Position numbers and translations under genes: made by a program. Under the pieces are notes generated by a model. The model did not search any database and had not been told where the DNA came from. It saw only the letters and a program-made list of their open reading frames with translations. 64,000 nt of DNA from Perkinsela sp. CCAP 1560/9 (Eukaryota > Protista > Euglenozoa: Kinetoplastea), in contig CBFFSA010000003.1 of NCBI GenBank assembly GCA_965644495.1, positions 186,001 to 250,000 on the forward strand, read 5' to 3'. This document shows, piece after piece, positions 12,011 through 48,700 of the stretch; positions within the stretch are counted from its first letter, which is position 1, and every line of letters starts with the position of its first letter.

Positions 12011-12968
12011 TCACCCCCCCCTATAATAGGGCCATTTTTGTCTGGAAGGCCAAAAAAGATTGGTAATAATAATAAATGCCGGTAAGGTGGAATCTCCCAG
12101 TTTTGTTCGGATTTCTGTTAATACCCCCTTGAAACCCTGAGTCCATTTTTTAGAAGACTCTGCATCTTGAAAATACGACGCTGCACGATGATCTTGTATG
12201 ATGCGCTTGTTATGTTCTTTGTGAGGAACTTTGGCATGCACACCATCCGTCACCCCCCTCCACAAGAAATGCGCGCGGTGAAGTACACCATCAGCAGATA
12301 CAAGTATTGTTGATGTAAATCCGAGACGCGTCCCTGCAAGCTGTATTGGCTTTCCCTTTGATGCACGTACCCATGTCCATTCGCGGTTTGTTTCATCCAG
12401 CTTACAGAAAAATTCATCCATGTTAAATACGAGTTCTGGGAGAATGTGGGAATTTTATCTCATCATAAAAGGACAAACCAGCCTTCTTCACTGCAGGAGG
12501 GGAAACCCATGTCTCTGCCGACGCGGCGAGCGTGATTATGGCCCGGAGCGTTATCCATGATCACTGTTGCCGCTGGTTTACGCTTTAACCAGTTGTAGAA
12601 ACCATTTCGTTTTGTCATGGCAGAGAGAAACGTTTCATTAGTGACCGTCTCATTCTCCGCAAACTCATGAAAACAGTGAACCTTGGGAACCCCCCATTTT
12701 CTTCATCTACAATAGATTCTAACATTATTCGAAACTCTTCATTATCAATCGCATTCTTACGTATGTATTTTATACGTTCTAACCCTCCTGTCTCCCGGTG
12801 GCGTTTAACCCATCGAGAGACAGTTGCTTCACTGCATTTCATAAGAGCAGCAGTGTCTGTAATCGAACGTCCCTGGTTTTGTACCTCATGGACGCAAATT
12901 ACACGTGTTTCATGAGTGATTTGTTGCGTCGAGAGGGTGCGCCTCTGGCGGCGAAGTGTTTTCGGCAT
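12011..12968 (-). pseudogene. Decayed pogo/Tc1-superfamily transposase
   Basis: N-terminal HTH (SITDTAALMKCSEATVSRWVKR), WFYNWLKR and VFNMDEFF, followed by a DDE_1-like segment; frameshifted. Confidence 0.6.
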
Positions 12969-13703
12969 AAAAGATGTGTTAGAAAGAGTTAAGTGGTATT
13001 TTATTCATAGATTAATGCGCTAAAATGATAAAAAATGATAAAAATCCGATTTTTTGCAGAATTTTCGGGTAAAAAATTCAGTAAAATTTTATCATGACGT
13101 CATATCAGCTTCAGGAGCGGCAACAATGGTGCCAGTAGTCTTAAAATTTCGAGATCTGTTGAATGCCGAAGGAATTAGGTCAAAAGCTCGCGCGGTACAA
13201 ATTTTAGACCCCCCACCTTTTTCGTGACCCCCCCTGTAAAGAAGTACTGCTCTATTTGCGACAGAGAGACGTTGTTCAGCGTTCGCTCCAATTCTTCCTG
13301 TCTGGATTGCTCTTCACGAGGTGATAGTATAACATTATTTTTAGAAGCCTGCCAACATTGTGCTGAAAATTGTGTCCCTGTTGGGAAGAATCTACAATGT
13401 ATGCTCACAGTGCCATGGCGCGCAAAGTCCGGAGACATTTGCACCACCATTAGTGGCCAAACTAAGTGAACGTGGGCTTGACATTGATAGAGTCAAGCGC
13501 GTTTGTTGTTCTTATGTCGGGTGGAACATTTGTGGCTGCACCATGTCGTTCTCCCAGGTGGCGCATATAAATTTATTAAATTAAATTTATTATGCATCAT
13601 AAAAAATTCTGCTAAGGCTGGGCCCCGCAAGACGTATCTTCGATCAGCCGAGGCAGTTGCTTTTTGGTTGGGACACGCTCTTCAAGGAAACAGTGCGCGA
13701 GAT

Positions 13704-15127
13704 GGCGGATTGTCAACACCAACGCACCACTTTTTTTCCCAAAAAATAATTTTCTTGTCATTTCCAGTGGACCACTTTTTCTTAAAAACTGTATTCTCAT
13801 TTCCAATGCACCATCAATTATTTAAAGAAGAATTATTTTATAATATCCTTCGGATCTACACTACAAATGCGCCGTTATTCAAGACTCAGTCATTACGATC
13901 GTAATCGTATTCAATCACTCTTTACATCTGGCGAGAGTCGGCGAAGCATAGCTCGCATAATTGGCAAAAGTCACAGCACTGTTTGTCGCGAGTTGGCGCG
14001 TAATGCAAGAAGGGGTCAGCGCTATGAGGGGACGAGGGCACAGCGCATTTCGAAAAGACGCCTCTCGTGTAAAAAGGTCAAGCCTCACAAGATACAAGGC
14101 CTTTTGGAAGAGGAAGTCAGCTCTCGACTTCAAAAGAAGCACAGCCCGGAACAGATTGCAAATACGATCCGTAGCTGTCGTACCGCCTCGACTTCTACCA
14201 TATATCGCCATATTCGTCGCAACGCGTCCTTAGGCGGCAAGTTGTACACCCATTTGCGGATCCGGCGAAAGAGGCCATACCGTCGTCGCACCAGACCTGA
14301 TCGCAGCGCGATTCCCAACCGAACGCCACTTGAAAATCGACCAGAAATTGCTAATAAGCGTCGGCGCTACGGCGATTGGGAAGCAGACTTGGTCGAGGGT
14401 CGAGGACATACCGGATATATTCTTACCCTGTGCGAGCGTAAGAGTCGCTTCCTTGTTCTTCGCAAGTTGGAATCTAAGCACGCGAAGGGGGTAAGCAAAC
14501 AAATTGTAGACGGGTTAAAGAATTACAAGGTTCAAACAATCACATACGACAACGGAACAGAATTCTGGCACCATGAAGAAGTAAACAAAAAATTAAAATG
14601 CAAGTCTTTCTTTTGCGCTCCATATCATTCGTGGGAGAAAGGGTCTGTGGAACATGCAAACGGTTTGATCCGACAATTCCATCAGAAAACCGAATCTTTT
14701 GAGAATTTGAACCAAAGTGAATTAAACAAAACAGCATTGGAATTGAACACTCGTCCTCGGAAATTATTAAATTATCGTTCTCCAATGGATTTTGTGAATG
14801 AACTGCGTAAGTAAAAGAAGCTAAGTAAGCAAAGGTACGTGAGAAAGCTTGTAAAGTTAGTCTGTTAGTGTTGGAAATTTAATGACATTAAATTTAAGCA
14901 TTTTGTAAAGGTGAAGAAATTCTTGTCTAATAAAGTTTCTTACTCAGATCTTACACTTGTATTACACTTTCTTTAAATACTCTGGATAAGTTTTTATGTT
15001 GAAAGGAAAAAGGAACGATGTTCAACTATGGTGAGGCGCAGAAAAAAGGAATGACGGTCGACTATGGTGAAAAAAGTGGTGCGCTGGAGTTGACAATGGG
15101 GTGGTGCACTGGAGTTGAACATCCGGG
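13704..15127 (+). mobile_element. Complete IS30-family insertion sequence
   Basis: Left IR ggcggattgtcaacaccaacgcacc; right IR ggtgcactggagttgaacatccggg, plus an inner copy at ~15070-15097; 3-bp TSD GAT at 13701-13703 and 15128-15130. Confidence 0.9.
13867..14814 (+). CDS. IS30-family DD33E transposase, intact
   Basis: HTH SRRSIARIIGKSHSTVCRELARN; SPEQIA; TIYRHI; GDWEADLV; TITYDNGTEF; WEKGSVEHANGLIRQF; LNTRPRKLLNYRSP. Confidence 0.95.
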   Translation: MRRYSRLSHYDRNRIQSLFTSGESRRSIARIIGKSHSTVCRELARNARRGQRYEGTRAQRISKRRLSCKKVKPHKIQGLLEEEVSSRLQKKHSPEQIANTIRSCRTASTSTIYRHIRRNASLGGKLYTHLRIRRKRPYRRRTRPDRSAIPNRTPLENRPEIANKRRRYGDWEADLVEGRGHTGYILTLCERKSRFLVLRKLESKHAKGVSKQIVDGLKNYKVQTITYDNGTEFWHHEEVNKKLKCKSFFCAPYHSWEKGSVEHANGLIRQFHQKTESFENLNQSELNKTALELNTRPRKLLNYRSPMDFVNELRK

Positions 15128-15931
15128 GATCTTTCAAAAACATTGCGTCGAATTTGGGAGTCCTATCGAGGACGTGAATCTGAGCTTCGAAAGGAGCAGC
15201 GCGATGCCCTTGTAAAGAAAGTTGAAGAACGCTTGGTTGATAAAATTGATGATTTTAAGATTGTTCGAGAAAAAGTTCACCGCGCTCAATCTTTGATCGA
15301 AGATTCTTCACTATCTGTCGAAGAACTTTTTCAACATCTTAAAGATAAGAAAGTTTTGCGAGAAGAAAAAGAGGTTCTTCTGCGGCACGTTAAGCGTCCC
15401 CAACCCCAACCACTTGCAGAAGGAAAGAAGGAAGAAAAGAAAGGTCGGACACGTATTATTAAGGGAGCACTAAGTCAGAATACATTGAAGTTCTCAGTTT
15501 CCTTGAATTAAGTGAAGTCTTTAAGGTGACGAAAGTTTTATGGAGTTGACCTTATACACGCATGTTCTGTGTTTGTAGCCTAAGTATGTAGATCTGGTAG
15601 GAAAGAATGTTTTTTCGTCGAAACGGAAAATCATATTTCTTTCAATATTTTTTGAGAATGCCTTCTGAACTAATTGTGTTCGGTCTTACAGATGCCACTC
15701 TAACCTACCTTGAGCGCCTCGGGTTTGACAAAGAAGAAATTTTTGCGTCATTTCTTTTCTTGCGGACCGGCGGGAATTATGTAACTGTTTCCGATCATCT
15801 AACAGCAAAATTTAAGCGCGGGTGGAGCGAGAAGTCATGTGCAACCAAAATTCCGGAGTTTTTTCAATCGTTATATAAGGATCTACGTCAAAACTGGCTT
15901 GAACCGCGCAATGACATTCTCTTTGACAACT

Positions 15932-16435
15932 CTAATGGAACGGACGGTTTTTTAAGCGACGATGTACGTATGGTGGTTGACACAGTTCCACTTTATGTAG
16001 ATGCTCTAGATGATTGCTAGAAAGAAGTTCAGACCGATCTCTACCCAATATCCCTCGAGCCATGCTTGCAACCAAGGATGCATCAACAGGTTTGTTTAAC
16101 ACATTGTACATCTTAATGCCATCTAAAACATCATTCTTTTCTGCATCCGTAAGCATATCTTTTCGGCCACGCTTGCCGGAAGGAGCATGGTCCTTCAAAG
16201 CATAGGCACTTCGTTCAGACATTTTCTTACCGTGCGTTTGATTCCAAATCTGCATGCTAGTCAAAACGGAACAACTCTCACAAAGTGCTTGGAATTCACG
16301 TACTTCTTCATCACTCCACGTATTTCTCTTTGCTTTGCGCGATGAGCGTTTAGCCTCAAGTTCCTCCACAAGATCTGCCACATGCCGTGATACGTAAAAA
16401 TTGTTTGAGGCAAGCGTCGACTGCGACGGGGCCAT
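15932..16435 (-). pseudogene. Probable pogo-like transposase N-terminal (DNA-binding) fragment
   Basis: KRGRKDMLTDAEK...VDASLVASMARGIL resembles the CENP-B/pogo second HTH; no catalytic domain. Confidence 0.4.
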
Positions 16436-16973: not shown

Positions 16974-17704
16974 TATTTATAAAAATTAATGAGAGAGGGT
17001 AGGTGGAAGGACGTGATACAGCACTTTAGCTGATAGGATGAACCAATTTGTTTCGCTGTAAGGATAGATTGCGGGTAAACAAAGACGATAATTATGAGAT
17101 GTTAACGATAAATATTTGCTTAAGCGCCCATAGAGTAATGAACGGAGGGCTAAGGTACAAAAGGCAGATCTTCACTTTCTGGAGAAAATTCTTCCTGTCC
17201 CTTCGTCTCCACAAACGTGATTATACGCCGATTTCTACGAATTTCTTCTTGATCAGCGATGCGCTGCGGGAAAAAATAAAAGCCAAGCCCCTTGTCCGAA
17301 GTGGAGTTCAAAAGTTTCGAGGACATAGAAATAATGTACTTCAGAAAAATTTGAAAGGGTATGACTCAGAACGAAATTATAAATTTTTGCAGAAATATAA
17401 ATCTTTGCAAAAAAATACCAAAGGTCATTTATTAAAATTAATGAGAGGGGGAATAGTTCAGTTTTTTTATCGTAAATTGCTATACAAGTAATATCTACTA
17501 ATACTAAGTAATACAGTTTATCTTGGCGTATTGATGCACTTCTTAAATCGAAAGGATATCGCGATCAAAAAGCCTAAATGTACGCCTTGCAAAACATCAA
17601 GAGTAAAACATGCTCCTTTGAACCATTTATCTTTAAAAAAAATTACGAAATTTTCTTTTTGGGTCATTTTTTTTATCAGGGCCCACGGCTCATAGAAGAG
17701 GGAG

Positions 17705-17960
17705 CCGGGAACTGGCACGCGGACTTCGAAATGATACGTACAGTGCCAGGCGCGCTGAACGAGCAGCGAAGAAGTCCATGCTGAAACGCCAGCCGCGCCC
17801 ATGCATGATTAAAGGAGAGATTAAAGACAAAGTCGTGTCTCTCCTACGCAGGTGCTTTAGCCCCCAGCAAATTACAGTAGTTTTGCGCAAAGAAGATGGT
17901 ATTAAAGTATCCCGAACGTCAATATACGGGTTTATTAAGCGGGATGATGGTCAACATGGG
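17705..17960 (+). pseudogene. IS30-like transposase fragment (same lineage as the 25752 copy)
   Basis: SRELARG...IKGEIKDKVVSLLRRCFSPQQITVVLRKEDGIKVSRTSIYGFIKRD. Confidence 0.8.
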
Positions 17961-18782
17961 AACTTGGAGAGTTTGAAAACAATTTTCCTAGCTCATCTTT
18001 TCTCTCCCGGAAACGGGCGTATTTTTACTATGTTAATGCCCGTTTCCGGATGGCGCTAGGAGAGGAACTGTCCCTCTTGTCGCAAAGTAGGGGTGCGCCT
18101 CCCTTCCCTCATCTCCCACCACCCCGCTCGGAACACGGTTCCGAGTCCCCATGCGCTGCAGGACCCTTCTACCATACCTTTTGTGGGTCCGTGGGTCCGG
18201 ACCCACGACCAGGGTCCGGACCCACGTAACAGCCGTAATACACTCAATATTACACTTAATATTGTATACACTCAAATCTTAATGCCGGTTATTTATAAAA
18301 CTTTATCAAAAACTTTTGGGATATATGCTAATTCGCCAGCGATGTTGGTTTTGGAATCATACATGTACCATATGTACTGTATTCTTTAATTCTTTTATTA
18401 CTTGAAGCTTTGAAACCTATTTCTTAGCCAAATCTTATTTGATGGAACATTCTTCGCTTCGTCCGACGAACATTGACTCAAGTCAAGACCTACCGCCGGA
18501 TCCACGTCGGAGACGATTGTCCGGGCGAAAATTCATGACGGAAGATGCCTTCCCACAATACCTCTCTCTCGTGCGATGTGCATCAGATTGTATGTACTCT
18601 CACGAAGGCATACCGTTAAATACCAACGGCTTTGAGCAGCACTACGAGTGCAATCATTGCAAATGGTCCTCGCACGGCAAGTATAAAAATCATTGTCTGG
18701 AGCATCGTCGTGCTTGTCTGGATAAAATTTCTTCGGAGCGAACTTCGGATCTCTGCGACCATGTGTGGATTGTCATACTCAG

Positions 18783-19175: not shown

Positions 19176-19629
19176 CTCAGTGCAACAAAAACGAGAAAAA
19201 TATGGGTGTGTTCCGGATGTCAGGATTTTCGCATACTCAGTGCAACGCTGTTTTTTCGGTCGGACAGCACCACGAACGGACGCGGGATTGTATGAGACAT
19301 GTTAAGAAAGAAACAATCGATTAAGATAAAAATGGATTAAGATAAAAAATTATATAAGGAGAAGAAAAAAGGAGTACCTGGATAATCGATATTGACGGAA
19401 CAACATAACGCGTTTCTTTAGTAAAGAGATGAACTTTTCGCCTTTACTGCTTTACAACTTACGGCTATACAACTTACTGCTTTCATGTATACCGTATACC
19501 CCCCCCCCCCCAGTAATAGAATGGGTTTTGGGCCAAAATGGCCAAATCTCTGTTACTGGGGGGTGTATGCTTTTTTGGGGGAGTAACTTCAGGACACTGG
19601 TCCGGACATGGAATTTTGTCACCATGGTA

Positions 19630-19955
19630 CTCCCCCTCTCATTAATAATTATAATTATAATCTATAAACCTTTTTAGTTTATAATTATAATTATAGTTTA
19701 TAATTATTAATGAGATTCGATAAGTGATTTTTTCTTACTATGGACTTCAATTTCTTGATTTTCGAGACACTACGTTCAACTTGGAAGCAATTTTTAGTGC
19801 AAAGTATGTGGTACAGGTGTCTTTGTAGATAAAAAATGATGAATTTGAGGTTTATAATTATAAAAGTGAGACTCAGAATTATAATCTCATTAAATTTCTA
19901 TAAACGATCCCTTTAATGATTTTTGGAGGTTTATAATTATTAATGAGAGGGGGAG
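19630..19955. mobile_element. AT-rich MITE nested in the pogo element
   Basis: TIR ctccccctctcattaataattataa and its reverse complement, TA flanks; related ends at ~11926 and ~17435-17455. Confidence 0.85.
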
Positions 19956-20651
19956 TACTATTTTTTCGAAGAAAAAAAAATTCTTTTTCACTCAGTTGTA
20001 TTCCTTATTAATGATTTTCTACTATCAATAGTAAAAAATTTTCTTGTCAAATTTTCCTGAGTTGCATGGTGCAAACTATTTGCTCCTGCTGGAAGGGTAG
20101 ACCCCCAGCCCCTTCGCCTCTTCTCCATCCCGTCTACTTCTCTCCCTCCCCTTCTTTGCCTTCGCCTTCCGTCTCTTCTTCTCTATCTCCATCCTCTTGT
20201 CCCGTCTCCTCCTCTCTCTCCCCTTCTTCACCTTCGCCTTCCGTCTTTCCTCCTTTATGTTCTTTGCCTTCGCCTTCCGTCTCTCCCTCTCTTTCCCCCC
20301 TTGTCCCAGACTCCTCTTCTCTCTCCCCTTCTGCACCCCCTGTCCCAGACCCCTCTTCTCTCTCCCCTTCCTCTCCCCTCCCGTCTCACGCTCCACGCCA
20401 TACGTTGGATGCGTACTGGGCTAAGAGATCACGGAGTATGGAGAGGGAGGTGATCCCAAGGGCTAGTGGGCCCGTAAGTAGTTCAGTATTGGGTTTTGGA
20501 GCGAAAGTATTGTGTGTTCAAGAGGGGATTGTTAGGAGAGGGGGGCATGTTGAAGAACATATAAAACGCAGGATGTATTTTCATACCAGTTTATCAGTCA
20601 AATATTCCTGGTTTTGATTTCCCTTGTTTATCTACCTCTGTAGAAGAGAAA

Positions 20652-22065
20652 ATGAAAAAAAGACAGGAAGATGAAGAAAGCGTTATTGTGGACATAGAGG
20701 CAACAACACAAGTTGCTTCTTCTGAATCAATAATCGCGAGGAAACAATATACTTATAATGAAAAATTAGATAAAGTGAGACGATACATGGCAGCCCCCTG
20801 GGGGCAAAGAGATAAGCTTGTGAAGGCAAGTGGGGTAAAGTACGGAACAACGGCAAGTTGGATGGCAAATTATGAAGATATAAAGAAGGCTGTACAACGA
20901 GGATTTGGCACCCTTACAAAGTTAATGCCACTCGTAAAATACAAGGAGCTTTTTGAACAAGCCTACAAATACTATTGTACCGCACGTGAAATGTTTTCTG
21001 CAGTTCCTATGTATCACATACGATTGTACTGCATGCAAAACAGCGAAGAATTTTCAAAATTAAAAGTAAAAGATCAGTATTTTAGGATCGGGGAATTTGA
21101 AATGCATTACGGGTTATCTGCTAGGCGTCGTACAGGCTTAACCCAACTTTTACCTTCTAATTTTCAAGAGAGACATGAGGCTCATTTTCGAGTTGTAGAA
21201 AATTCTTTAAAAGACGAGTGTTTCCCTGAATTTATTATTCTTTTGGATGAGACGGGTGTTTTATGGAACCCTGCTCCTACAACAACTTTAGCTCCAAAGG
21301 GTTCGAAATGTGTTCCTATTAGAATAAAATACGAGAAAAAACAGTCAACTTGTCTTTTGTGGGTTTCAGAATGTATTAAAAGAAATGAAAAAGGTTACGA
21401 AATATTCAATGCAAAATATGAGAATCCTTATATTATTTTTGAAGGAAAAAAGGAGTGCCAAAGATCTAATTCAGTGGAGAGTAAGGTAAGGAAGGCTGTT
21501 GAACAGAAGCCTACGTACGCAGAGGTTAATCAAACGGGGTTTAAAATTCGTTGAAAAAATTCCCAATTGTTATAACAAGAGGGCGTGGCTTATTATGGAC
21601 AGATTTTCAGCCCACCGCACAGAAACAGTTGAAAACGCAATAAGTAATAAGGGATATAAAATTTTTTATATTCCTCCTGGTTGTACTTCTATTCTGCAAT
21701 TTCAGGATGTTTATGTGAACAAACCATTCAAAGATCGTATTAGAAACTTTTACACCAAGCATTGTATTGAGAAAAATAATAATGTAACGAGAGAGCTTGT
21801 TGTTCAATGGGTAGTGGACGCCCAAGCATCATTAAAATTACAAATGATAGAAAGTGGAATAAAAAAGCTTGTATTAAGAAATTTTGTAGGAGTTGGAGAA
21901 GAAACAAATGTCAACCAAGGGACAGACGCGGATCTTCCGACGGAAGTGCAAGTGGCGCTTTTAGAAGATGAGCCGCAGGATCTGTCCTTGGTTGCCGTTG
22001 CAATATCTTTTGCCGAGGCAGTCCAGCCTGAAGAACATGGCTATGAAAATATAGAAAGTGATTAG
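20652..22065 (+). pseudogene. pogo DD35D (DDE_1) transposase with one frameshift near 21530
   Basis: LLDETGV; LIMDRFSAH...IPPGCTSILQFQDVYVNKPFK. Confidence 0.88.
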
Positions 22066-23010
22066 CTTGCATAACATTATCGACTTCTATTTTAACTGTC
22101 ATGACAGTTTTTTAGATGTCGTATCAACAAACTTCAAGTAACTTTAGTAACTTAGCTTTAGTCTCTCTTTCATCTTCTTTTAGTCTAAGATCTCTTCTAA
22201 TCATGAGTAAATGCTTTCGTTTGAGCCACCACCACCCAACCCGTCCAGCGACCCATGACGCCCAGCCTCCCCTGTCACCCCCCCCCCCCAACCCCTCACC
22301 AAACCACCCCCGACGCCAGCCTCCCCGGACCGCCCAACCTCTCACCCAGCCATCCCCGACGCCAACCCCCCCAGCCACCCAGCCTTCCGAGCCGAACCTC
22401 TGTTACTGGGGGGGGGGGTGTCTTACTGGGGGTATACGGTAGTACCGTCTCTTCATAGTAAAATTTGGCCTTCCAAGCTCTTTGAGGAGACCCATTTCAA
22501 GCCTGCCCCGAACATAAGGCCGCCTTCCGCGGATCCGTAGGCACTTGTGAAACTTCCCCCCATTGTCTTTGTCTCGACAAACAAATCGATAGATTGTGGA
22601 AGTGGATGGTGAACCTTGTGAGCCAACAAGTGTATATCCTATTAGCAACCTGCTCCGGGCTGTGAAGCTTTCGGAGACAGGTCTTTACACTTTTTTCAAG
22701 ACTGGCTCTAATTTGACGTGGTCTGGTCCCTTTATTGACCAGTCGTCTCTTGGCAACACGATGGGCACGGCTAGAACGGTATTGCCCACCTCTTTTCCTG
22801 TTGCGTGCCAGCTCACGACATACCGTACTTGGGGACTATTATGTAGAAATTAACCTTTTGTTGCGCTGAGTATGACAATTTGTTGCACTGACATTGACAA
22901 TCCACCATGCACCGTACATGGATAAAGTTAAGCCTTTTAATACAAAGGTTTTACCATGCTTATACGCGATGACAAACCTCCTGGAAGTAGATACATATGG
23001 TTTTTAAATA

Positions 23011-25460: not shown

Positions 25461-25711
25461 AGCGGCACATTGACAATACATAAGGCACATTGATAATGCA
25501 TAAGGTGTATTGATAATGCATAAGGCACATTGATATTGCATAAGGCACATTGATATTGCAAGAAATTGGGCACTTTTGTATTGCATAGTAAGCGGCACAT
25601 TGATAATGCATAAGGCATATTGATAATGCATAAGGCATATTGATAATGCATAAGGCATATTGATAAGGCATAAGGCATATTGATATTGCATGAGGCACAT
25701 TGATAATGCAT
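25461..25711 (+). repeat. 20-bp tandem array (aaggcacattgataatgcat)n upstream of an IS30-like ORF
   Basis: About 11 units; related units at 36291-36380 (inverted), 37349-37386, 40795-40930, 41355-41490 (inverted, divergent) and 43997-44040 (inverted). Confidence 0.92.
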
Positions 25712-25751
25712 AATCGATTTTTTTCTAATTTCCACTTTTTTTTGTCGGGCA

Positions 25752-26443
25752 ATGTCGAACTTCAATAAAGTGAAAACGCGTCTTGATTCGGATGATCGAG
25801 CGATGATAGAACTGTTGCATAACCAACAAGAGTTTTCTCAAGAGGAGATAGCGGAGAAGGTAAAAGCCTCTCAATCTACAATCAGCCGGGAGTTTGCCCG
25901 GGGCACCTTCAAAGACGTTTATCACGCGAAGCGCGCCCATCTTGCGTGCAGTAAAGCGATGTCAAAGCGCAAGGGAAAGGCTTACAAAATCGAAGGTGAC
26001 GTGGAGGAAAAGGTGATCCGTCTATTGGAACGACGATTTAGCTCGCGGCAGATCAGCGTGGTCTTACGTAAAGAAGATGACGTTAAGGTGTCGCGTGTCG
26101 CAGTGTACGGTTTTATCAGGCGTGATGAATCCCTCGGGGGAACACTGTATAAGTGCCTGCGTCGAGGCGGTGGTCGAGGCCGTCGCCTGCGCGGCAAAAG
26201 CCGTTTTAAGATCCCGAATCGCACAGACATTAGCGAAAGGCCCAATGTTATCAACACGCGGGGAAGATTTGGTGACTGGGAGTGCGGCCTAATAGAGGGG
26301 TCAACGCACAGTGGGTTCTTCCTAAGTTTGCTGGAACGGAAAAGCAGGTTTGGTACACTAAAGCTACTGCGCACGAAGAAGAATGAGGTCGTTGCAGAGG
26401 CTATTGGTAGCGCCCTGGAACACTATCTTGTTCATACGATTAC
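25752..26443 (+). pseudogene. IS30-family transposase truncated at HTIT, just before the second catalytic Asp
   Basis: SQEEIAEKVKASQSTISRE; ISERPNVINTRGRFGDWECGLIEG; LLERKSRF; an insertion follows. Confidence 0.88.
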
Positions 26444-26611
26444 GGGCTTGAGGGCACGTTCGTTGAATCTTCAACGAACTGAGCGCCCGTTCGTTGAACA
26501 TTCAACGAACGTGTCCCCTGGGGGTGCAATTTTGTTTTCCCACAAAAAAAATTTATTTCCCCAAAAAATATATTTCCCCTCCCACAGGAATGGCTGCGAC
26601 ACCTAGTTTAG

Positions 26612-40100: not shown

Positions 40101-40979
40101 GGTAAGATACGGGAATGTTAAGAAATGAAGTAGGAAAGTCGTTGTAGTATAAAAGAAAAGTTAGAATTCGTAAAAAAAATAATGCGACAAAAAAAAATTT
40201 AGGCTCCAAAATATGATATTGCTAATTTGATTGCTTGTTTTAAAATCGTATACCCCCCCGATGGACCTACAGGGTTCAAGTATTGGGTAAAAATATAGAG
40301 GCAATGCCGCGTTTCATACTTCTCCCCCCTTATTCATTGCAAAAAAAAAACAAAAAAAAAGTCCCTCTGCAGTATTTCCCTCTCGCGTCCCCCACCCCCG
40401 TGCCAGCAGCCCAAAGTATTATATACTTGCTCACGGGGTGGGGGCAGAGATCCTGGCGGATGGGCTCGTGCGTCGCTTCCTCTTGCCCCCGCGTCAGTCG
40501 CCCCGTGTCTTTTCTCTCCGCGCTCTTCCCCATCGGTGCGACGGCGTCTTCGCGTCTCATCACCTCCAAGTCTCCCACCCACGTACAGCAATCTAATGTA
40601 TCTAATACTGCTAACGGGGTGGGAGCAGAGGTTCTGGATCATACAGGCCTGGGTGCGTGCGGATTTGGAAGTGGGGTAGGGAGTAAGAGAGGGGAAGCAG
40701 GAAAAGGGGTAGGAAGTAAGGGAGGGGAGTAAGTGGAAGCAAGGGAAAGTTGGAAGTGTGGATATTGTGGAAAAGTAGGACAAGTACATAAAAAGCACAT
40801 TGATAATGCATACTAAGCGGCACATTGATAATGCATATAGCACATTGATAATGCATATAGCACATTTATATTGCATATAGCACATTGATAATGCATATAG
40901 CACATTTATATTGCATATAGCACACTGATAGCTCATACGTGTTTTTACTTGACCTTCAGAATTTTATTTGACCTTCAGA

Positions 40980-41064
40980 ATGTCAGTTTCCCAACGTAAA
41001 ACTAAACGCCTAAACACCAAGGCCCGGGAAACTATCGCAGTGCTCTATAATCAACAAGGCTTCT
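40980..41064 (+). pseudogene. N-terminal stub of an IS30-like transposase downstream of a 20-bp array
   Basis: MSVSQRKTKRLNTKARETIAVLYNQQGFS resembles the 25752 N-terminus; cut by an element starting CAGGGGTCG. Confidence 0.6.
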
Positions 41065-41800
41065 CAGGGGTCGCTCGCGCGACCGCCGCTAAATAGGGGG
41101 GGAAGGTGGTAGTTGTGGGGTATGGAGGCCTCTCGCAACTCCGGGGCCTCACCGGGAGGAAAGGTGAATTTATTTAATTCCATTTTTTGGCAATGTTAAG
41201 AACCTAAAATTTCTAGTCAACCTCAAATTTCGCGAACACCAACCAAAAATGATCATATTTTTTAAGGGATCAATTTTTTTTTAATGGGTCAAAACTTTTT
41301 TAAGGGCTCGAAAAATATTTAAGGGCTCGATTTTTTTTTCAAGTTTTATGCCAGATAAAGGTGCGGATTTTATGCAATATAAAGGTGCAGCTTAATATGC
41401 CATATAAAGGTGCATTATGCAATATAAAGGTGAATTATGCAATATAAAAGTGAATTATGCAACATAAAGGTGCAGCTTAGTATGCAATATACAGTGGTTT
41501 CAGTTGATCTTGCCCCCCCCTCGGAATTTTGATTTTTTTTATCCATTTTTGCTCATCTTTGCAGCATTGGACAGATCTCGTTCCCCTAGCGAAGAGCTTT
41601 GCCGCTTTTTTTTCATAGAGACCCTCTGGTGCCCCCTGGGTCCGAAAAACACTGTTTTTTTTGACGTTTTCTGTGTACACAACCATTTTTTGTCACATTT
41701 TCCCGATTTTTTGTACATTTTGAACATGTAAGTACGAGTAATAGTGTTCTAAATTGATAATTTGAAAGCTCTATGTCTAGTACCATCCCTATCGCCTAAT

Positions 41801-42000: not shown

Positions 42001-42969
42001 TGCAGCTTTGCATGACAAGTTCGTCTTTGCCACAAGACAGGGAACGCAGCGACGAACAAAAACATTTACACTCATTGAATTGTCGTTCGGGGTCAGTGAA
42101 AAAAGTTCCGGTTCGTTTGCGATTCTCTGTCCCTCGCGCACTAAACAAGTGTGATTGATATGGTGATAGTAATGGTTGTTATGGAGCGAATGACTCCACC
42201 ACGGACAGTCGCGACACTTTATGTGAGTCCGCTGGCCCATGGTATTCACGAGATGGGGCCGAGGATATTTCTCGGCGTATTCGCGACACTCTTTGTTTTT
42301 CTTCTCCAAATCTTTCGTTCTACCAGGCGGGGTATCCATTCCCAAGCAGCGTTCACGAAAGAATTTTGTCGAAATACGGGGAAACCGCATTGGGTCCTGT
42401 ACAAGCTGTTTTCGAACTACTTGCCTTACAGAGCTTGCCTGTTGTGATGGAGAGGACGACATTTCCTCTTCAAGCCTCGCGGTACACTCTCGTCGTACTG
42501 AGACAGGAACATAACTCCCTGACGGAACGTTATCGGAAATTTCAAATCTGCTCTGGGTAGGACCATCTGCTGCTTCCGTGGAAGCATCTCGCTGCATGGC
42601 AGTTCTATTCTTCTTCGCCGAATTGGTTCTCTTGGCACGAACCGAAGTAACTGAAGGAGTAGTAGATGAAACAGATTCGGAAGAATTTGCTTCAGCTAAA
42701 GTTGGCACGATTGCATCTGATGAAAGAGCTGGGGGAGAAGGTATGCGGATAGGAATCATGCGCCCTCTTCCTCGAACAGAGGTGTGCATTGTGAAAAAAG
42801 AAGTAAATTAACACAAAAAAGTAGAAGACTGGTTGCAAATACATTTTTTAAACATTTTATAAACATATATTCTGTTGAAAAAAATTCTTTCAGAAACCAC
42901 ACAAGCACTCAAAATGTTTCGACCTTTCGACCGTCGAACGACGTCGAATTCGACGTCGAATGACAGCTA
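42001..42969 (-). mobile_element. Second copy of the hAT-like element (5' part)
   Basis: Nearly identical to ~35245-36213, including the TIR ttcgacgtcgaatgacagctat. Confidence 0.92.
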
Positions 42970-43907
42970 TGGATATAGTCACACAACACGTATTAGAAGG
43001 GCGCATGGAATGGGAGAAAACTCTTGACTCCGCACACCACCACAGACCCGCTATCCTCGCAGCCGACCGACTTCATGACAAACAGAGCGCCAGAGCATGG
43101 GTCCGCCGATACACCGAAAACGAGCTGATAGCTGAGTATCGTCGCCGCGCTCCCGTCGCAGCTAAATGGTTTAGTGAGGAGACAGATGCTGAGTTAGCTG
43201 AGGATTTTGCGCGAGCTCTGCACAATATACATGGAAAAGATCTCTCTCGGTTTACCTCGATGGTCATGACCAGTTACGCCCCGCCGAGCCTATCTAACTC
43301 ACGTGCATGGGGGAAGGCTGATGGACACGTCATCTGTCCGATCTGTCGTGAAAGGAAGCAAACCTTACGACATGTCCTAACCAGCTGTACAACATCTCTC
43401 TTACAAGGCCGTTATACATACCGACACAATATGATTCTGAAGGTCCTACTAGACACGCTTCGAAGTTGTGGTCACATACGAGCAATGTATTTTGATCTAC
43501 CTGGCAACCCCTCCGAGGAGCACCCACCATCATGGCTAGCAAACTTTAGCACGCTACGACCAGATGGGTGGATTCTCCTAGAAGATGGCTCAGAATACAT
43601 CATTGAACTCACCTCCCCGTGGGAAGAAAATTTTGATCAAGCCCGCGAACGAAAGCGCGCAAAGCACGAGGAGATTTTGCGCTACCGACAGGCAACAAAC
43701 GTACGCACGAGCCTCATAACATTTGAGGTCGGAGCTCGGGGCAAACTTAGCGATAGTACGCTCGATCTTTCCTGGGTATTCCCAAAAGATCATAAACACC
43801 ACGTTCGCAAAATGCGTGAAAACTTTGCCCTTGCTGCACTTCAGGCTTCATTTAGGCTATATACTATGCGACAGAACCCCACCTGGAACCCACCACAAGC
43901 AGCTTAA
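42970..43907 (+). mobile_element. 3' part of a HERO/NeSL-like RLE retrotransposon ORF
   Basis: CPIC..TLRHVLTSC..LLQGRYTYRHN; RPD; IIELTSPWE; FEVGARG; 5' end abuts the hAT TIR. Confidence 0.85.
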
Positions 43908-45704: not shown

Positions 45705-48700
45705 TTATGTATTAGGAATGGTCAAATTATTATGAGGAATAGAAAGTGTACCTCGCTCTTTCCACGGGATCTTCGTAGCTTGTACAGGGATAGGTGTGTT
45801 AATTAGTCGATAAACAAAGTTAATTAAGCCTTTGGCTTGCTCGTCTTGATTTTCATCAGCTGAACATAATAGCTCCTGAAGCAAAACGTTTTGTATATAA
45901 TTCTTTAGAACTATAACGTTGTTATAGGTACTTTCGTCCATATGTGCTACGAGCCACTTATCGATCACGCAAAGTCCAAGGTCATTTCGATACTCGAAGT
46001 CAGTCAGATCGACTCCAAATAATAGTACGTGCCACATGGATATGCTTGTAACGCAATTTAGAGTAGGCGGATGTTTCGCGGTACGTTGTTCATCGGAGTA
46101 TACAAAATATGGCGAAGAAACATGCGGAACAACGCTACTTTGAGGACCAATGCGCATTAAGATTTCCATCTTTGTTCGACACTCTGTAGCTTGTAGCCCC
46201 ACGCCGCTTCCTCGGTATAACGCAATTCGTGGTGCATGCATGGTGCACAAAATACTCTTGGCCATGCCGACGGATAATGAGTAAGTCGATAGCTTCCCAG
46301 TATCGACGAACGCCGTTTCTTCGTTATTACACGCAAGCCTCGCATCTGCAGGTACTAATCCAATATTCTGAAGAATACCATAGTACTGCTTCTTGCATTT
46401 GGCTACAGACTTGAGTGAGTTATGGCAGAGGTTGGATTCGCCTAAAAAGTGAGCAACTTTGCTCGCTTCATGCATCGATAAAAATGCCCACTGATTATAT
46501 GCATTCACCTGGGCAAGGTGGTCGGACATTGTTTGATTCATAAAAATATCGATTTGAACTTTATTTTCCTCCGCTTCTCCGCGAAATATACTTTTAACTT
46601 CCTCTAAAGCAGCTAGTGTCAATGCTGTGTCCAAGCAACAAAGGGCACATCCAAGCACAAGCGCTTTTGCAACAGAAGGTCGCACAGGAAAAAAACTCAT
46701 GGCACGGCCCAATGCAGTCAAGTTTTCTTGGGCTGTAATTGCATCCAATTTTCTTAAATTTTTTAGCGCCAATTCGACGTTTTGCGGTGGAGGTGGGATG
46801 AGGGCCTCTTCAAAGAAGCGTCGCGGATCTTTTCTCACGTCCCTCATGGAGAGCAATTGAAGCAACGTAGAGTCCAGGGAAACATTCTCTATTTCTGCCT
46901 TCCTATACGGAGCCATGGCTTCGTAATCTTTCGAGCTAAACATCCGGTAGCAGATACCTCCTTGCGTGCGTCCCGCACGTCCTTTGCGCTGAACACAATT
47001 GGCTTGTGAAGCAAGACGTATAGTGAGCTGAGATGACGTCATATATTCGTTTTGACCAATGCTTGTATTTCCTTTGTGCCTATGAAAAATTAATTCTTTG
47101 CTGCGTCCGAAATCGATGACGACCTTTACATCTGGAAGCGTTACAGCACTCTCCGCAATATTCGTAGCAAGAATAATTTTCACCTTATTTTGAGAAACAG
47201 GTAAGAAACATTGCCTTTGCTGTGCACTTGCGACGCTACTATGTAGAACAAAAGTCTCAAATTCAGGTACTGAGCCAATAACTTCAGAGACAGACCGAAT
47301 TTCGGATATTCCCGGAAGAAATATAAGTACACAGCGACCGTAGATATCATCATGTACGAGTGAATATTTCAACACGAATAATAGAAGTCTAAAATCTAGA
47401 AGAGTTTCAGCACGCAGTGGAACACCCTTTTCTGCAGTAATCAGAGATGGAGACGTGAAATTGTCCGCTTTCGCTAAGAGTCCTATATCCTCTAAAAACA
47501 GTGTTTTCACAGGATAGAGCTTACCTTCCACTTGTAGAACAGGCACATGCTTGACACCTACACCTGCACCTACACCTGCACCGCCTGTTTCCAAACAACT
47601 GTGGCCTGCAGTTTCAAAATAAATTTTAAATTGTTCCGCATTTAACGTCGCTGACATTATTATTACTCGTAGATCTGGGCGACGGATCCGTAATCTGCGG
47701 ACAAAAATGAGTAACAAATCGGTGTTCAAGTCTCTCTCATGAACTTCATCAATAATTAAATGTGAAACGCCCTCAAGTTTGGTGTTGTTGTTCATTAAAC
47801 GCAATAGCATCCCCGTAGTACAAAAGTTAAGTGATGCCCCCCTTCGGACATCAAAGCGGACCATGTACCCCACTTTACCACCCACTTGACTCTCACCGAG
47901 CTCAAAGGCAACGCGTTCAGCTATAGAAATAGCACTTATCCTACGAGGTTGAGTCACAAGAACTCGAGCACTACGGTTATTGTTCAAAATGTATTGGGGG
48001 ATTTGAGTAGTTTTACCACAACCAGTAGTACCACATATAATGATGACCGAGTATTGTTGTAGCACAGTAAGCATACGTTCTTTAATTTGGCTTATTGGGA
48101 GAATAGTACCCGTTTGTTTAGCATTGAACACTCTACCAATGTACTGTACGCCGCTCCATGAATCCGACTTAATACCTCTGCTGAAAAGGTCTGAGACGGG
48201 ATCATCCGCAGTGTCGGATGACTCGTCAATCTCATCGAAGTTATTCTCTGTAGTGCTTATCGTATCGATAAGGTCAAGCAAAACTGCAGTCTCAGATAAA
48301 GCTATATTTACCGAAGGTATGTATTCGGGTTGTAGTTGCGGATTCGACTCCAAAATACTTACTAACGATTGAAACGTCAAAGACATTTCATTCAAAGCAG
48401 AAAACATTTTCCGTACAGCGATGTCACAAGCCCCATTTAGAGTCCCATGCGTACCTTGAGAAACGATTTCATTTTTAGAATCTCCATGTACTAGACTCAT
48501 TGTGCATGTCTTTGATGTCGTGCCCGTAAAGCTCAGCTGCGTCGAACTTGTTTTTGTTTTTAAAAAAGGAAGATCCAGGCAAATTACGTACAAATCAATG
48601 ATACAGCGCATCAGTTTGACGTTCTCTTCGATTACAGTGACGTGACTCGGTATTGTATTATAGATTTTCCACTGAAATTCATCATCAATTCGACGAAGTA

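Follow-up and report, generated by a model that had tools for sequence, protein, structure and literature searches.

The question raised by this locus is whether an insertion sequence of a bacterial family can live as a transposon in the nucleus of a kinetoplastid. The window analysed is a stretch of 64,000 nucleotides of the Perkinsela sp. CCAP 1560/9 assembly GCA_965644495.1 (contig CBFFSA010000003.1, positions 186,001 to 250,000 of the forward strand), and positions are counted from its first letter. In an earlier note an intact IS30-family element was described at about 13.7 kb, and it was proposed that a horizontally acquired IS30 lineage had become an active eukaryotic DNA transposon. 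The proposal is supported, provided that active is read as recently mobile; those refuting conditions of the note that could be examined all came out in its favour. It is very probable that the lineage is resident and has recently been mobile in a kinetoplastid nuclear genome, the likeliest history being a single acquisition from a bacterium followed by diversification.

Window 13704-15127 is an IS30-family element of 1424 bp (Table 1). Its limits were set by the points where the homology among seven full copies ends, and the left terminus is the same in six of the seven, as well as in an interrupted copy and in short derivatives. The 25-bp IS30-style repeats and the 3-bp GAT duplication of the earlier note were both found: positions 13706-13730 pair imperfectly with 15101-15125 (25 nt, 80% complementarity), and GAT stands on either side. 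The transposase frame is stop-free. Its product matched the NCBIfam model NF033563 transpos_IS30 (equivalog) with E 4.3e-72 and 243 bits, the cut-off being 80, and covered the model in full (positions 1-267 of 267), while Pfam HTH_38 was matched at the N-terminus with E 1e-13. The catalytic triad consists of D174 (nt 14386-88), D228 (14548-50) and E262 (14650-52), the last two with a spacing of 33 residues, and these columns are invariant in an alignment with 13 IS30 relatives, so the uninterrupted DD33E transposase claimed before stands. Of the features by which an IS30 member is recognised, the element shows the match to the family model, DD33E with an N-terminal helix-turn-helix, a single open reading frame (ORF) between terminal inverted repeats in the range of about 20-30 bp, and a duplication of 2-3 bp; the place of the prokaryotic host is taken here by a kinetoplastid nuclear genome. 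Judged by sequence and architecture, the element is an IS30 member outside the known host range of the family.

In the assembly to which the window belongs, 110 contigs with a total of 21.0 Mb, a genome-wide search gave 127 or more protein-level IS30 matches. The seven full copies are 97.5-100% identical and lie on six contigs with unrelated flanks. Each has a perfect 3-bp duplication different from the others (GAT, CTT, GGA, TAC, GAC, CCT, TTT), and the 315-aa ORF is kept intact in all of them. An eighth full copy, found by a DNA search with the element, has the duplication GAT and is interrupted at TA by a 1.55-kb Tc1/mariner-type element. Derivatives without transposase were also observed: an element of about 985 bp, present in two copies 97.8% identical, has only its ends in common with the family and is bordered by ACC and AAC, and a 731-bp derivative is bordered by CCA. 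Since these elements carry perfect duplications and no transposase, they must have been mobilised in trans. Altogether 11 of the 12 complete-ended elements of this family (A family) have perfect 3-bp duplications, with ten different triplets and GAT occurring twice. The family is thus dispersed in many copies with duplications and has derivatives moved in trans, as is characteristic of a eukaryotic class II (cut-and-paste or DDE) transposon with autonomous and non-autonomous members. Around the duplications of the eleven sites at most a weak purine/pyrimidine symmetry could be seen, the sites being too few to claim a target consensus. One 1.3-kb flank of the other six copies is an LRR gene, and the rest gave no Pfam match.

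Other subfamilies have left similar signs. For an L011-type copy, a paralogous empty site lies at a distance of 8 kb, with flanks 97-98% identical and AGTA present once there and twice around the copy; the length of this duplication may be taken as either 3 or 4 bp, and in the L009 type only two of the three letters match. The occupied and the empty L011-type loci (L011 and L149) are at G000:C18:38804-40404 and 47139-47346, where a purine-rich flank resembles a local segmental repeat. A further short A-family derivative (L154, G000:C1:765705-766800) has its right part masked by runs of N. The Tc1/mariner-type interrupter of the eighth copy (L156, G000:C9:569300-572800, locus 1225-2780) has perfect 20-bp terminal repeats CAGGGGTGCAAATCAGATGC, a TA duplication and a 328-aa ORF matching DDE_3 and HTH_Tnp_Tc3_2; Tc1/mariner elements are apparently also young in this kinetoplastid genome.

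Contigs of four public runs (X1-X4; four samples, one study) were placed on window 12800-16200. One X1 contig joins 13700 straight to 15128, skipping 1427 nt, which correspond to the element and one GAT, with 3 ambiguous letters at the joint. The depth of this contig is 3, compared with about 9 for the unique flank. The joint is that of a never-occupied allele and not of an excision footprint, and as evidence of an insertion polymorphism it is good but not conclusive. Contigs of X2 and X3 begin in the unique flank, cross the left and the right junctions and extend 28-29 nt into the element, ending at the length expected at the start of a repeat. In X2 the depth of the element is 4-5 times that of the flank, and a loose end in X4 matches the sequence flanking the contig-2 copy. 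Another X2 contig (depth 49) skips 216 nt (13732 to 13949), by which the leader and the start of the ORF are lost, and may represent another deletion derivative. In a 2015 run with the same species label no sequence words of the stretch were present.

Could the family nevertheless be extinct, its near-identical copies being products of segmental duplication or gene conversion, with nothing having moved recently? Many of the 127 or more matches are indeed fragments with stops, some copies sit in repeat-rich DNA, and a search for RNA runs of the organism found none. However, the seven copies have unrelated flanks and each its own duplication, they differ by 0.3-2.5% with the ORF intact throughout, the transposase-less derivatives have duplications of their own, and the window insertion is polymorphic in X1. 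Extinction is thus a very unlikely explanation. The activity spoken of here is recent mobility only, as read from the duplications, the near-identical copies, the derivatives moved in trans and the empty allele.

According to the earlier note, removal of the element and one GAT restores an interrupted reading frame. The frame is indeed open across the junction, and in tblastx it is colinear with the uninterrupted paralogs L114, L116 and L117, but it does not belong to a host gene. Of the two ORFs in L117, an intact paralog, the frame corresponds to the first, and the second matches DDE_Tnp_4 (E 4e-10). Window 15607-16020, a fragment with no Pfam match of its own, resembles the start of this second ORF. 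The target of the insertion was thus ORF1 of a PIF/Harbinger-like transposon. Disruption of a host gene was considered and rejected, because the interrupted frame lies in this Harbinger-like element and has no ATG, the joined frame containing no M. The insertion inside a Harbinger-like element is added evidence that IS30 lives here among eukaryotic transposons.

The Harbinger-like family is represented at window 13250-16020, and its intact member L117 (G000:C1:1852774-1856052) consists of a Cys-rich ORF1 of about 264 aa and a DDE_Tnp_4 ORF2 of 340 aa. Just upstream, at 12615-12968 on the minus strand, a 117-aa ORF matches HTH_23, HTH_28 and, weakly, HTH_Tnp_IS630; this ORF is probably what is left of the N-terminal part of a transposase of the IS630/Tc1 type.

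Relatives were searched for among 5.8 billion proteins (with queries from both deep clades described below), in one representative genome per bacterial or archaeal species, and in JGI metagenome contigs. The near-identity to a bacterial IS which, by the earlier note, would have refuted the proposal was not found: in these three large searches no bacterial or environmental relative exceeded 50% identity, the best being 40-50%, and the JGI contigs, scanned with the organism's own family alignment, gave nothing above 46%. The closest non-self protein (P0002/P0162, 49%) is encoded on 1.3-2.8-kb contigs without informative neighbours. The nearest named relatives are IS30 elements of Verrucomicrobiota metagenome-assembled genomes, followed by those of Neisseria.

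A careful maximum-likelihood tree was built from 79 sequences, for which the bacterial matches were retrieved by queries from both clades. All 16 transposases of the organism fell in one clade (UFBoot 97, SH-aLRT 96) with two deep sub-clades, and a single change suffices in 94% of the bootstrap trees. The clade stands at the base of a group dominated by Verrucomicrobiota, so the donor cannot be named more closely. The dN/dS values are 0.08-0.12 between subfamilies and 0.19 within the young family, which indicates that the transposase has evolved under purifying selection. The GC content at third codon positions (GC3) of the transposase genes is 0.42-0.54, compared with 0.37-0.49 in host genes and 0.60-0.75 in the bacterial relatives. 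The clade, the dN/dS values and the host-like GC3 together argue that the lineage was acquired once and long ago, and that it has since resided in the eukaryote under selection to keep its transposase functional.

The same data have to be weighed for the possibility that the subfamilies go back to several independent transfers, each from a different bacterium. Identity between the two deep clades is only 40-44%, which puts them about as far from each other as each is from bacterial IS30; in a first quick tree the monophyly had an SH-aLRT of only 89, and the bacterial diversity was sampled through word- or pattern-limited searches. The support of 97/96 and the single change in the careful tree speak against this explanation, as does the lack of a bacterial relative above 50% for either clade. 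Moreover, a repeated subterminal core or arrays were found in the three first-clade subfamilies tested and, by eye, in the second clade, and not in two bacterial relatives. Several transfers are therefore improbable. In the preferred history of a single acquisition, an IS30 element would have been taken up once from a bacterium, the nearest sampled relatives being Verrucomicrobiota; the lineage would have persisted under purifying selection on its transposase and split into two deep clades with about ten subfamilies, and its youngest family, which includes the window copy, would have given rise to no fewer than seven copies that are intact and to several derivatives that are non-autonomous.

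The kinetoplastid and nuclear nature of the genome, assumed in the earlier note, is supported by its genes and spliced-leader motifs. The host genes of the window encode a protein kinase, an MCM protein, a DEAH helicase and a stand-alone Topo_C_assoc protein, which has only the C-terminal domain of topoisomerase I. A topoisomerase IB of two subunits is a kinetoplastid trait, and the lone small-subunit gene fits such an enzyme. A spliced-leader 3' motif of kinetoplastid type with its splice donor (TTTCTGTACCTTGTTG|GTA) occurs 101 times over the contigs and 0 times in the reversed control, and it is found on all contigs bearing copies of the element; the four of these whose lengths were read measure 0.79-1.5 Mb. 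The spliced-leader RNA-like genes (e.g. L121-L124) are dispersed singly on most contigs and form no single tandem array. Their exon ends in ...ATAAAGATACAGTTTCTGTACCTTGTTG|GTAC, the 3' end of the leader being ...CAGTTTCTGTACCTTGTTG, and an intron stretch with a CCCGGAAACGGG hairpin is conserved in three of the four copies read; some of the dispersed copies may be retroelement-associated relics.

IS30 being otherwise a bacterial family, one rival explanation is that the copies belong to a bacterium in the sample and that assembly or binning put them together with eukaryotic contigs. The genome appears to be a bin of a metagenome-style assembly, as contig names like ctg3222l (ENA ERZ24900291) suggest, and the runs hold other DNA too (55-200 Mb of contigs each). 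Such contamination or mis-assembly is, however, already contradicted, and its probability is almost negligible. Eleven A-family elements occupy eleven unrelated sites, each with a perfect 3-bp duplication, and spliced-leader motifs and eukaryotic genes are found on the contigs in which the copies lie. IS30 elements are nested with Harbinger-like and Tc1/mariner elements, short-read contigs from other samples reach the junctions, the best bacterial match is at most 50% identical, and the base composition is host-like. A chimeric join to bacterial DNA was not seen on any of the six contigs bearing the full copies.

Several points weigh against residence and recent mobility of the lineage. All sequence evidence comes from one study, with no second isolate. 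RNA runs for the organism were not found, and the runs that were found (four, of one study) are of unrecorded kind and available as contigs. The empty allele is represented by a single contig of low depth, the shorter side of which has only 30 letters, and the flank there belongs to a low-copy repeat family. The 521-bp internal-deletion copy has no duplication. A joined-ends circle or tandem dimer was not seen among the run contigs, which drop rare forms and so are uninformative either way. Closer matches among European Nucleotide Archive (ENA) contigs were rejected as independent support, being the same loci as in this assembly. When inverted repeats and duplications were searched for at the single second-clade loci L018-L029, no reliable ends were obtained, because these ends are tandem arrays. 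Finally, the window copy is on the strand opposite the nearest clearly host genes, so its own expression by read-through is uncertain.

How the element would move and be expressed can be outlined by analogy. In E. coli, IS30 transposes by a copy-out-paste-in route through minicircles or IS dimers with joined ends (PMC9333248). The kinetoplastid transposase would bind the terminal repeats and the repeated subterminal core copies, which are thus putative transposase-binding sites, and a joined-ends circle would be formed with the donor left in place, as in bacterial IS30, which fits the rise in copy number. Integration would follow a 3-bp staggered cut at loosely specified targets. A conserved basic stretch, RRKRPYRRRTR, found also in the bacterial relatives, would suffice for nuclear entry. 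Function in a nucleus is plausible, since IS30 transposase fused to DNA-binding proteins gave directed IS30 integration in zebrafish (Szabo et al. 2003, as cited in PMC8875745).

The leader of 163 bp before the ATG is AT-rich and contains pyrimidine tracts followed by AG (e.g. AG at 13767-68) about 100 nt upstream of the start codon, which look like a trans-splice acceptor. Kinetoplastid genes are transcribed polycistronically and matured by trans-splicing, and an incoming gene needs no promoter of its own; this may explain how a bacterial element could establish itself in a kinetoplastid. The transposase gene would accordingly be transcribed by read-through of host polycistronic transcription, and its messenger would be matured by trans-splicing at the candidate site in the leader.

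In the earlier note at least five IS30 traces, the intact copy included, had been counted in the window, at 13.7, 17.7, 18.8-22.9, 25.7 and 41.0 kb. All were confirmed; the one at 41.0 kb is end-array DNA only and gave no IS30 transposase match at E 1e-3. In the 284-aa ORF of the 25.7-kb locus the first ~232 aa match IS30 transposases, with 58% identity to the L020 type. A unit of about 100-117 bp, derived from the end region or the 3' flank of L020-type elements, forms long satellite-like tandem arrays remote from transposase genes (G000:C19:71840-77806 and C13:121400-122000). Two further intact ORFs on the plus strand, 42960-43907 (315 aa) and 20652-21554 (300 aa), have no Pfam match; the latter lies within the 2.95-kb insertion that splits an IS30 copy and probably belongs to another mobile element.

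Table 1. Features of the IS30-family element, its insertion site and other IS30 traces in the window.
Feature	Position	Strand	Remarks
Target-site duplication, left, GAT	13701-13703		Same as 15128-15130; homology of seven copies stops exactly here
Terminal inverted repeat, left	13704-13730	+	Begins GGCGGATTGTCAAC; 25 nt, 80% complementarity
Left repeat core, three direct copies	13710-13735, 13755-13780, 13794-13819	+	Direct-repeat family in 13710-13819
IS30-family transposase gene, intact, 315 aa	13867-14814	+	HTH_38 at aa 3-46; DD33E
Right subterminal repeats	15004-15100	+	Pair 15004-15034/15040-15070; inner inverted-repeat copy 15065-15097, 88% to left end
Terminal inverted repeat, right	15101-15127	-	Ends GAACATCCGGG; all seven full copies finish here
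Target-site duplication, right, GAT	15128-15130		Same as 13701-13703
Harbinger-like ORF1, upstream half of interrupted frame	13503-13703	+	tblastx colinearity with L114, L116, L117
Harbinger-like ORF1, downstream half of interrupted frame	15131-15511	+	Ten paralogous matches in the genome
Harbinger-like ORF2, truncated N-terminal part	15607-16020	+	By-eye likeness to N-terminus of the L117 340-aa DDE_Tnp_4 ORF
Second-clade IS30 transposase fragment	17702-17973	+	About 95% (aa) and 97% (nt) to L020 type
L010/L011-type IS30 copy, split by 2.95-kb insertion, internal deletion	19176-22880	-	Pieces 19176-19491, 22440-22502, 22509-22880
Second-clade IS30 relative	25464-26606	+	~20-bp tandem end arrays 25464-25714, then truncated 284-aa ORF
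Non-coding end-array DNA, second clade	40787-40937, 41061-41174		blastn

Comparison with the bacterial IS30 elements of Verrucomicrobiota and Neisseria shows what was kept and what was changed. Alike are the single ORF of about 315 aa with N-terminal HTH_38 and DD33E, the repeats of about 25 nt starting with GGYGGATT, the 3-bp duplication and the loose target specificity. The Verrucomicrobiae relative (L047-L050) is present in four identical copies of 1214 bp with the duplications CTG, ATA, GTT and TCC; it begins GGTGGATT, the kinetoplastid element begins GGCGGATT, and the terminal GGYGGATT is common to both. In contrast, the kinetoplastid host is eukaryotic, protein identity is only 40-50%, and the first-clade elements measure 1.39-1.47 kb compared with 1.1-1.2 kb in two bacterial relatives. 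These two relatives have a single pair of the repeat core, whereas most kinetoplastid ends have two or three copies of it or tandem arrays: three left and two right in the window copy, three at each end in the L009 type, three right and one left in the L011 type, and two left in L010. In the second clade the ends consist of tandem repeats of about 20 bp. The AT-rich leader with pyrimidine tracts and the host-like base composition are likewise unlike the bacterial relatives. The core IS30 features are thus retained and the ends are rebuilt in the kinetoplastid elements.

The earlier note had held that IS30 is not a recognised eukaryotic superfamily. No report of a eukaryotic IS30 was found in the literature searched, in which Repbase and ISfinder were not included. 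The prokaryote-eukaryote transposon links named in PMC10045372 are IS630/Tc1, IS1380/piggyBac, IS1595/Merlin, ISAzo13/Zator, IS256/MuDR, IS5/Harbinger and IS481EU, and IS30 is not among them; when 430 eukaryote genomes were surveyed for the major IS groups, all of them included, only IS607 was found (PMC3673617). We moderately favour the wider reading that IS30 founded a true eukaryotic superfamily ('IS30EU'), which would have been kept for long in the kinetoplastid lineage and would still be mobile, with its ends serving as transposase-binding arrays and its leader adapted to trans-splicing. An IS30 lineage with subfamilies, derivatives and insertion polymorphism would add a new superfamily to the eukaryotic ones and would show that a bacterial copy-out-paste-in transposase can sustain itself in a nucleus. 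If 'IS30EU' is real, it would be the first active DNA transposon known in Kinetoplastea, with a transposase of this kind naturally adapted to eukaryotes, and it could provide a native insertional-mutagenesis tool for kinetoplastids. These organisms were thought to carry almost only retrotransposons (PMC8101967, PMC12278014), trypanosomatids being reported with retrotransposons only (PMC12278014); a mobile DNA transposon matters for genome plasticity there.

Among the known systems, the closest parallels are IS481EU, IS3EU/GingerRoot, ISL2EU, Merlin (IS1016) and Zator (ISAzo13) (Kojima and Bao 2023, PMC10045372), in which, as here, a prokaryotic DDE IS lineage was established and amplified in eukaryotes. 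In them, too, the duplication length and the end features of the IS family were kept, and restriction to a single protist group is known from IS481EU as well. What differs is the source family, and the kinetoplastid IS30 is so far found in one organism only. The IS607 elements of eukaryotes (Gilbert and Cordaux 2013, PMC3673617) and IS5 in bdelloid rotifers are also prokaryote-type IS in nuclear genomes, with some copies intact, but their copies are few and little diversified and were taken as recent transfers. For the kinetoplastid IS30, in contrast, the matches number 127 or more, the lineage has two deep clades as well as non-autonomous derivatives, and its base composition is ameliorated, all of which suggest long residence and sustained activity. 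The nearest case by host is Merlin in Bodo saltans and Perkinsela, which was reported as the first kinetoplastid DNA transposon and judged inactive (PMC8101967). Both are DDE DNA transposons of non-trypanosomatid kinetoplastids; in Merlin, however, neither inverted repeats nor duplications could be detected there, whereas the IS30 elements have intact ends, duplications and an insertion polymorphism.

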